NCBI GenBank assembly: GCA_904063045.1 | Contig: CAJFCJ010000008.1 | Coordinates: 248,001-312,000, forward strand | Direction: 5' to 3' | Length of the DNA: 64,000 nt | From: Dimorphilus gyrociliatus | Taxonomy: Eukaryota; Animalia; Annelida | Shown here: piece by piece, positions 40,624 through 42,370 of the stretch | Position numbering within the stretch: the first letter of the stretch is position 1 | How the letters are laid out: every line of letters begins with the position of its first letter | Position numbers and translations under genes: made by a program | The notes under the pieces: generated by a model | Seen by the model: the letters and a program-made list of their open reading frames with translations, nothing else | What the model was told of the DNA's origin: nothing | Database searches by the model: none

Positions 40624-42370
40624 ATGGATTGCGAACCAAAACCGTCCAGTTCTAACGAAACATTGACCGAACCAGAGTTAGAGAGTAATAAGACATTAAC
40701 TTTTAAAATAACTTATATTCAATACTACTTTTAAAAAAATCACTGTTAGATTCGATAGAATCTTTGAAAATAAATGAACAATTAAAAGAACTACTAAAAG
40801 AAAAGGGATTTAAGATCAGCGAGATATTAAAGAGTAAACCGTCAAACTTGAAATCAGGTAAGATTGATAAACCGGAATATAGACAAATAAAAGCTTATAA
40901 AACTTACTTTTCAAATTTAATCATAATACGTGTCTTATTTATCTTTTGTAGATTTGGGTATAACAGCTAAGGATGCTCTATTAATAATCAATGCTGCCAA
41001 AGATGCGGAACCTACCAGTTCGGAAAAATTTTCAGTAGCTAGTCGAAATGCTCTTGATATGATTTATGATGCTCCCAACGCCAGTATACTAACTTTCTCT
41101 AAAGCTTTAGATGATTTGCTAGACGGGGGCATTTCAACTAATTGTTTAACTGAGATAGTGGGAGAATCTGGATGTGCTAAGACCCAGTTCTGGTAAATCT
41201 TCCTTCTTTTTTCTTTATCAGACAATTTTACAATTTATTTTATCTATGATAACCCCATTCGAATATTATTTACAGCTTGCAAATTGCGGCTGCTGCAACA
41301 ATACCTCAAGAAATGGGGGGTTTAAATGCATCCACAATATATATAGATACACACAATGGAGTATTTATAGATAGAGTAAAGTCAATAACTCTTGGTGTAG
41401 TTGAAAAATGCCACAAATCGGCCAGGGAAAATCAACTAGGTGAGTGAAAGACATTTAAAACGTTCATAGCTTGGGAACAAATGATATACGACTAATTATA
41501 ATTACTTCTTCTTATTTTCTTTTTTAAGATATTTCAAAAGAATTAGAATCTTATACTCTTGAAATGGCTCTATCAAAAATTCTAATTCAAAAGCCAATAA
41601 GTCTTCAACAGTTGATGATTTCAATAGGTCGCTTAGAAGAATTTATTAAATTACATTCGCAGGTATTGATAGTAAATCATGTATAAGTAATTAGAGGATT
41701 TCTATTACTAATTATCATTGTTCTTCAGGTGCGTGTGATAATTATCGACAGTATTACTTTTCCCATAAAATATGTTGTCCATGATAGTGAAGAAAGACTT
41801 AAAATACTTCTTTCTATCCATGCAACTCTAAGGGAACTATCACAAGATTATAATTTAGCGGTAAAATTATTTTATCCTTCACCTAACCTTAAAAAGTGAA
41901 CATGTGCTTCTTTTTGCAATTTGAAAATGTTAGGTTCTCTGGACAAACCAAATGACTACAGGGCCTAATAGAGATTCTGTAGCTGCGTTAGGCGATAGTT
42001 GGGCTCATGCATGTACCCAACGTCTAACTTTTTCCAAATTAAACGACGACTTTCAAGCAAACATATGGAAAAGTTCATCAAATCAAGGAAACAGTATAGT
42101 TTTCAAAGTAAAGGCAAGTATATATTTTAAGAGTTTTCTTTGATTAGCTAATTCCCGTTGTTTTCCCTTTTCTTTCGTTTATATTTCTAACCAGTTTAAA
42201 GTCTACAAAAAGCATGAAAAAACAATCTTAAGCCTTTTGTTTTTTCCATGCTATTTATACTCTGAACTTGGTTGTTTTGTTAAAAATGCACCGATTGCAA
42301 GAAATGCATAACTAATTGTTTTCTTGTATTTCAACAGGAAGAAGGTATAAGAGACGCAGAAGAAACTTAG
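40624..42370 (+). CDS. RAD51C: RAD51 paralog C (350 aa)
   Basis: Exons 40624-40684, 40750-40857, 40952-41192, 41276-41439, 41529-41662, 41729-41860, 41934-42113 (GC donor), 42338-42370. RAD51C-like ILTFSKALDDLL, LQIA..TIPQEMGG, TNQMTT, ALGDSWAHA and EEGIRD. Confidence 0.9.

Follow-up and report, generated by a model that had tools for sequence, protein, structure and literature searches.

Dimorphilus gyrociliatus carries two RAD51C genes, one on contig C8 and one on contig C7 (hereafter the window gene and the C7 copy), and in the window gene the glycine that precedes the Walker A lysine is replaced by alanine and the catalytic glutamate by histidine. Both substitutions recur in related animals, and the gene that bears them is under purifying selection. 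The best overall reading, to which we assign a probability of about 0.6, is that the window gene would be a non-hydrolysing, structural duplicate of RAD51C that perhaps serves an XRCC3-type complex.

Results

Gene model of the window gene

The window (the whole stretch of 64,000 nucleotides that was analysed) corresponds to C8:248001-312000 of a 77.9 Mb assembly in 349 contigs. Around the window gene the DNA is AT-rich and eukaryotic in character, with short GT-AG introns. The gene occupies positions 40624-42370 of the + strand and has eight exons that encode 348 aa with no internal stop. The features, in window positions, are the following:

40624..40684, + strand: exon 1, predicted, with a predicted start codon (ATG 40624, donor GTAATA); provisional
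40750..40857, + strand: exon 2, N-terminal helical domain (AG acceptor, donor GTAAGA, in frame); aligns to the N-terminal domain of the C7 copy
40952..41192, + strand: exon 3, linker and Walker A; ends after base 2 of the Cys codon that follows KTQF
41161..41184, + strand: Walker A GESGCAKT (codons GGA GAA TCT GGA TGT GCT AAG ACC; Ala GCT at 41176-41178)
41276..41439, + strand: exon 4, 164 nt, counterpart of human RAD51C exon 3 (167 nt); same length in the C7 copy
41340..41357, + strand: YIDTHN (codons TAT ATA GAT ACA CAC AAT; His CAC at 41352-41354)
41529..41662, + strand: exon 5, 134 nt, equal in length to human RAD51C exon 4
41729..41860, + strand: exon 6, 132 nt, equal in length to human RAD51C exon 5; carries Walker B VIIID at 41735-41749
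41934..42107, + strand: exon 7, with the TNQMTT loop, the ALGDSWAHA motif and the Lys aligned to the lysine finger
42108..42337, + strand: last intron, 230 nt, with blocks conserved in a window-type locus of a relative (L019)
42338..42370, + strand: exon 8, EEGIRDAEET and then the stop codon (TAG 42368-42370)

Within these exons, the Walker B Asp (counterpart of D242) lies at 41747-41749, the Gln of TNQ (counterpart of Q285) at 41949-41951 and the lysine-finger Lys (counterpart of K328) at 42069-42071.

The last intron stands out by its length of 230 nt, compared with 65-94 nt for the other introns of the gene. Like the corresponding intron of the C7 copy, it interrupts the gene two residues ahead of G[FI]RD, at a position that we take to be the c.1026|1027 boundary of human RAD51C. 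Its alignment to the intron of a window-type locus in a relative (L019:1064-1391) has 74% column identity and long conserved blocks, despite the saturation of synonymous sites in the exons; at the same place a second such locus (L015) has an intron of only 66 nt. An Rfam scan of the gene region including this intron returned no match. The conserved blocks could have a regulatory role, encode a small RNA or form an alternative exon.

Assignment to RAD51C

The Pfam profile Rad51 (PF08423) matches exon 3 with 30 bits (cut-off 22) and exon 4 with 14.5 bits. Among PDB chains, exon 7 matches RAD51C only, and its sole match in the genome of D. gyrociliatus is itself, while the best PDB matches of exon 4 are the RAD51C structures of Alvinella (8gj8 and 8gja). 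Exon 3 is ambiguous: its PDB matches belong to the RadA/RAD51 family and include RAD51C, but RadA and RAD51B come out slightly ahead of it. On the same exon RAD51D reaches 19.5 bits, less than RAD51C, and it is missing from the match lists of exons 4 and 7.

The strongest evidence for the identity of the gene is its structure. A phase-2 intron splits the Cys codon (TG|C) after KTQF and is followed by exons of 164, 134 and 132 nt; in human RAD51C, the boundaries c.404|405, 571|572, 705|706 and 837|838 correspond to a phase-2 split of Cys135 and to exons of 167, 134 and 132 nt (PMC9221245). The XRCC3 and RAD51B genes of the same genome have no intron at the KTQ-Cys point and read straight through it. 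An assignment of the window gene to XRCC3, RAD51B or RAD51D was rejected because those genes or best matches are found elsewhere and the window gene has the RAD51C-specific intron pattern. Alignments and intron positions alike support its descent from RAD51C.

Two substitutions at the active site

The window gene deviates from the canonical Walker A motif GxxxxGK[TS] and has His in place of the catalytic Glu. In HMMER alignments to PDB sequences, the Ala of GESGCAKT aligns to the Gly immediately before the Walker A Lys of P. furiosus Rad51 (1pzn)/RadA, and by coordinates it lies opposite G130 of human RAD51C (query 33-78 = 8faz_C 87-133). The His aligns without gaps to the IDTE glutamate of Alvinella RAD51C and of RadA, and it occupies the position of the catalytic E161 of human RAD51C (query 1-44 = human 136-179). 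The Walker A Lys and Thr, the Walker B Asp, the Gln of TNQ and the Lys of the lysine finger are all kept. The gene lacks the Glu but keeps Lys and Thr of Walker A and the Asp of Walker B, the combination that defines non-hydrolysing RAD51 paralogues at the sequence level (PMC7614784). In each of the other five RAD51-family genes of the genome, both positions have the canonical residue.

The initial annotation of this DNA had described both changes, G130 to Ala in GESGCAKT and, gap-free, E161 to His, as well as an intact Walker B and an otherwise intact open reading frame. The two changes are confirmed by the codons at 41161-41184 and 41340-41357 and by the HMMER alignments, for the His to Alvinella RAD51C, and the reading frame is indeed intact over eight exons with GT-AG introns throughout. 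Sequencing errors had been named as a possible objection; however, the same Ala and His occur in two other, independent and diverged assemblies (L015, L019), so that chance as well as sequencing error can be rejected.

A second RAD51C and the RAD51 family of the genome

The second RAD51C lies at C7:2709991-2711977 (L012:589-2575) and consists of seven exons joined by GT-AG introns, encoding 351 aa. It reads GPPGIGKT and FIDTEGSF, and thus has a canonical Walker A and the catalytic Glu. RAD51C was the best single-domain PDB match in all three exons tested. The C7 copy also has exons of 164, 134 and 132 nt and, after KTQ, a Cys codon that is split by a phase-2 intron, and it is only about 31% identical to the window gene. 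Since both copies share the exon structure of human RAD51C, they represent an old duplication at the DNA level; this duplication predates the divergence from the sampled relatives.

The C7 copy has two peculiarities of its own. In exon 6 (L012:2232-2399) it reads TNH where RAD51C has TNQ, which places a His at the position of Q285, a residue that we take to be a gamma-phosphate sensor of the RecA Q194 type. In addition, the linker between its N-terminal domain and the core is seven residues shorter than that of the window gene. Both the TNH and the shorter linker are conserved in a relative (L017).

A genome scan with the Pfam Rad51 profile detected six loci on C14, C1, C4 (two), C8 and C7. 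Besides the C7 copy these are:

C14: RAD51-like
C1: DMC1-like
C4:1626843: XRCC3; best PDB match human XRCC3
C4:1692471: RAD51B; PDB matches RAD51B only
C8:289083-289190: the window gene; a single exon match of 28 bits

RAD51D and XRCC2 were not detected in the genome with PF08423, PF06745, PF13481 or the DNA pattern for GxxGxGKTQ, in exon-level six-frame searches that are weak for divergent paralogues. The additional matches of these searches were myosin, UPF1-like and DEAH helicases, RuvBL1/2, Twinkle and NUBP.

Conservation and selection in related animals

Logan assemblies of related animals (runs SRR23372216, SRR23372228 and SRR23372229) were analysed with exon-level searches. Two window-type loci were found (L015/L016 and L019/L020), both intact from exon 3 to the stop codon. 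Their Walker A motifs are GEPGTAKT (L015) and GESGSAKT (L019), and both read YIDTHNG; the Ala is encoded by GCT and the His by CAC or CAT. In the P-loop of the window-type sequences the Ala is thus fixed while two other positions vary, and the His is likewise fixed, being conserved in L015 and L019 as well as in the sequences P0009 and P0010. The Walker A Lys and Thr, the Walker B Asp, the Gln and the finger Lys are conserved in both L015 and L019. Because all five of these residues are kept, the sequences argue that the nucleotide pocket of the window gene still matters.

Substitution rates were estimated by the method of Nei and Gojobori over about 240 shared codons:

Window-type pairs: amino acid identity 75-80%, dN 0.11-0.16, pS 0.54-0.73 (near saturation), dN/dS 0.05-0.12
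C7 pair: amino acid identity 92.5%, dN 0.043, pS 0.43, dS 0.65, dN/dS 0.07

Even without correction, pN/pS of the window-type pairs does not exceed 0.21. The non-synonymous rate of the window gene is about three to four times that of the C7 copy. The window-type genes thus evolve faster, but they are under clear purifying selection.

The orthologue of the C7 copy was found in the same runs (L017/L018); it reads GPPGIGKT and IDTE and has actin upstream, as in D. gyrociliatus. The window-type loci of the relatives have no flanking genes in common with the window, and their dS to the window gene is 1.8-2.5, above the values of the C7 pair (0.65) and of actin (0.9). Because of the different flanks and the higher dS, these loci may be co-orthologues of the window gene rather than strict orthologues. 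L015/L016 and L019/L020 are about 79% identical at the protein level and stem from the same runs, and both contigs begin at a shared 30-mer of exon 3. The two loci could be paralogues, haplotypes or the genes of two species in the sample.

A search of representatives with exon 7 (58 aa) gave eight matches, comprising the exon of a relative (P0001), two partial RAD51C-like proteins (P0007 and P0008) and five apparently spurious matches to repeat proteins. A word search with exon 3 gave no matches. P0007 (258 aa) has a RAD51C-like C-terminal half in which a unit ALGDAW...RLLL...VLVKS is present three times in tandem, and its N-terminus resembles a transposase; the predicted protein is probably a chimera or the product of a misassembly.

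Contig C8 also contains, at G000:C8:14085-35989, a tandem array that comprises at least eight genes. They are intronless, encode about 320-346 aa and have a weak match to LRR_4. Members of this family directly adjoin a window-type gene in a relative (L015:2597-9983), at an identity of only 30-40%.

Discussion

RAD51C is a tumour suppressor and sits in two different complexes of RAD51 paralogues. In the human BCDX2 complex, RAD51B and RAD51C are the active ATPases, as the initial annotation had stated, while RAD51D and XRCC2 are devoid of the catalytic Glu and hold ATP non-exchangeably (PMC7614784). E161 is the catalytic Glu of RAD51C, and the mutation E161A abolishes all ATPase activity and the loading of RAD51 in BCDX2 (PMC7614784). 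In the complex of XRCC3, RAD51C, RAD51D and XRCC2, the ATPase of RAD51C is uncoupled and E161A is without effect; RAD51B and XRCC3 bind to the same face of RAD51C (PMC7618403). For human G130A the complex still forms, ssDNA binding and ATPase activity are intermediate and HR is 0.32, and the variant has been proposed to be likely pathogenic (PMC9499524).

The window gene is read as non-hydrolysing because the two positions that are changed in it each impair hydrolysis in human RAD51C. From the human mutants we infer that ATP hydrolysis has been lost, and nucleotide binding has probably been retained. An old DNA-level duplication gave rise to two RAD51C genes in the worm lineage, and in the window gene the RAD51C fold was retained while the Gly before the Walker A Lys changed to Ala and the catalytic Glu to His. 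Its product would bind nucleotide without hydrolysing it and act as a structural subunit in a complex of RAD51 paralogues, a state that is natural to human RAD51D and XRCC2. The choice of partners is speculative: the C7 copy, which keeps the hydrolytic site, would pair with RAD51B, where hydrolysis by RAD51C is essential, and the window gene would serve a filament-capping complex of the XRCC3 type, where hydrolysis is dispensable. Both partners, XRCC3 and RAD51B, are present in the genome. Several points speak against this reading: a His might serve as general base in place of the Glu, RAD51B and XRCC3 share one binding face on RAD51C (PMC7618403), the C7 copy is not fully canonical, having TNH for TNQ, and the window-type loci of the relatives may be co-orthologues. 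Moreover, profile and pattern searches did not detect RAD51D and XRCC2, so that the worm may have complexes unlike those of humans.

In its most specific form, the two roles of RAD51C would have been split into two genes, a hydrolysing C7 copy that acts with RAD51B and a hydrolysis-dead window gene that either acts in an XRCC3-type complex or replaces the undetected RAD51D. This division of labour is possible, and it is put forward here tentatively. If true, the pair would mirror the finding for human RAD51C that its ATPase matters only in the RAD51B complex.

A histidine can act as a general base, and to our knowledge the change from Glu to His has not been tried in any RAD51 protein. The window gene might still encode an active ATPase, with the His as general base and a P-loop Ala that tunes affinity, so that the two copies would be divergent but similar isoforms, for example for germline and soma. 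The conservation of the Lys, Thr, Asp, Gln and lysine finger under strong purifying selection would be in line with this, as would the intermediate ATPase activity of human G130A (PMC9499524). Nevertheless, retained activity is unlikely, since E161A leads to complete loss of ATPase activity in BCDX2 (PMC7614784), the Glu is invariant in the five other members of the family in this genome and in the matched structures of RadA, RAD51 and RAD51C, and two separate changes that have been fixed together at one active site look like a loss of catalysis.

Another explanation would be that the window gene, although derived from RAD51C, has taken the position of RAD51D in the tetramer, the original RAD51D having been lost or having become unrecognizable. 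The negative searches for RAD51D and XRCC2 would fit such a replacement, and human RAD51D is naturally devoid of the catalytic Glu and holds ATP, the very state that is predicted for the window gene (PMC7614784). However, exon-wise six-frame searches with profiles perform poorly on divergent paralogues, as illustrated by the window gene itself with its one match of 28 bits, and RAD51D may have been missed. Moreover, the loops and the linker of the window gene are of the RAD51C and not of the RAD51D type, which makes the replacement quite improbable.

It is very unlikely that the window gene is a redundant duplicate on its way to becoming a pseudogene. The faster non-synonymous change (dN 0.11-0.16 versus 0.043 for the C7 copy) and the loss of two catalytic-site residues might point in this direction, but the same two substitutions are fixed while adjacent P-loop residues vary, and the reading was rejected on account of the low dN/dS and pN/pS values and of the reading frame and splice sites, which are intact in three diverged assemblies. 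The initial annotation had named, as one combined objection, a second canonical RAD51C and decay of the window gene: the former exists on C7, whereas the latter is contradicted by a dN/dS of about 0.05-0.12 and by the intact reading frame in the three assemblies. Its own proposal, that RAD51C itself turned into a scaffold or pseudo-ATPase around which the complexes of the species were rewired, is hardly tenable, for although the substitutions are real, the canonical RAD51C on C7 is intact and conserved (dN/dS about 0.07-0.13).

In this genome, one of the two RAD51C copies seems to have fixed changes at both positions that are known from loss of ATPase activity in humans, namely G130 and E161, and to have been kept under selection nonetheless. 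That the ATPase of RAD51C is essential together with RAD51B and dispensable together with XRCC3 was published between 2023 and 2026. Should the partners of the two copies differ, the pair would represent natural separation-of-function alleles and would provide an evolutionary test of which functions of RAD51C need hydrolysis. No description of a RAD51C duplicate of this kind was found in a literature search. It should also be noted that a gene with a deviant active site should not be taken as "the" orthologue before the rest of the genome has been checked.

Comparison with known RAD51 paralogues

The window gene resembles human RAD51C (8faz_C, 8ouy) and the RAD51C of Alvinella pompejana (8gj8, 8gja) in having a Rad51/RecA core, an N-terminal domain and a lysine finger, and it shares with them the motifs KTQ[LF]C, IDTxxxFxxDRV, DSI[AT]FP, TNQMTT and ALG[DE]SW[AG]HA. 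With the human gene it further shares exon boundaries and phases, including exons of 134 and 132 nt. In contrast to both RAD51C proteins, it has Ala for G130 and His for E161, its matches reach only 17-26 bits per exon, and it is one of two copies and not a single gene. The C7 copy is like the window gene with respect to exon-intron layout, family and conservation in a relative.

The human variants G130A and E161A concern these two residues as well. The Walker A change of the window gene is exactly that of G130A, whereas its Glu is replaced by His and not by Ala. Furthermore, the human variants are disease alleles or engineered loss-of-function alleles, while in the window gene both changes have been fixed together under selection, beside an intact second copy. 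The window gene resembles RAD51D and XRCC2, the ATP-holding structural subunits, in that the catalytic Glu is absent while Lys and Thr of Walker A and the Asp of Walker B are retained; unlike them, it is derived from RAD51C according to gene structure and motifs, and it deviates at the P-loop glycine.
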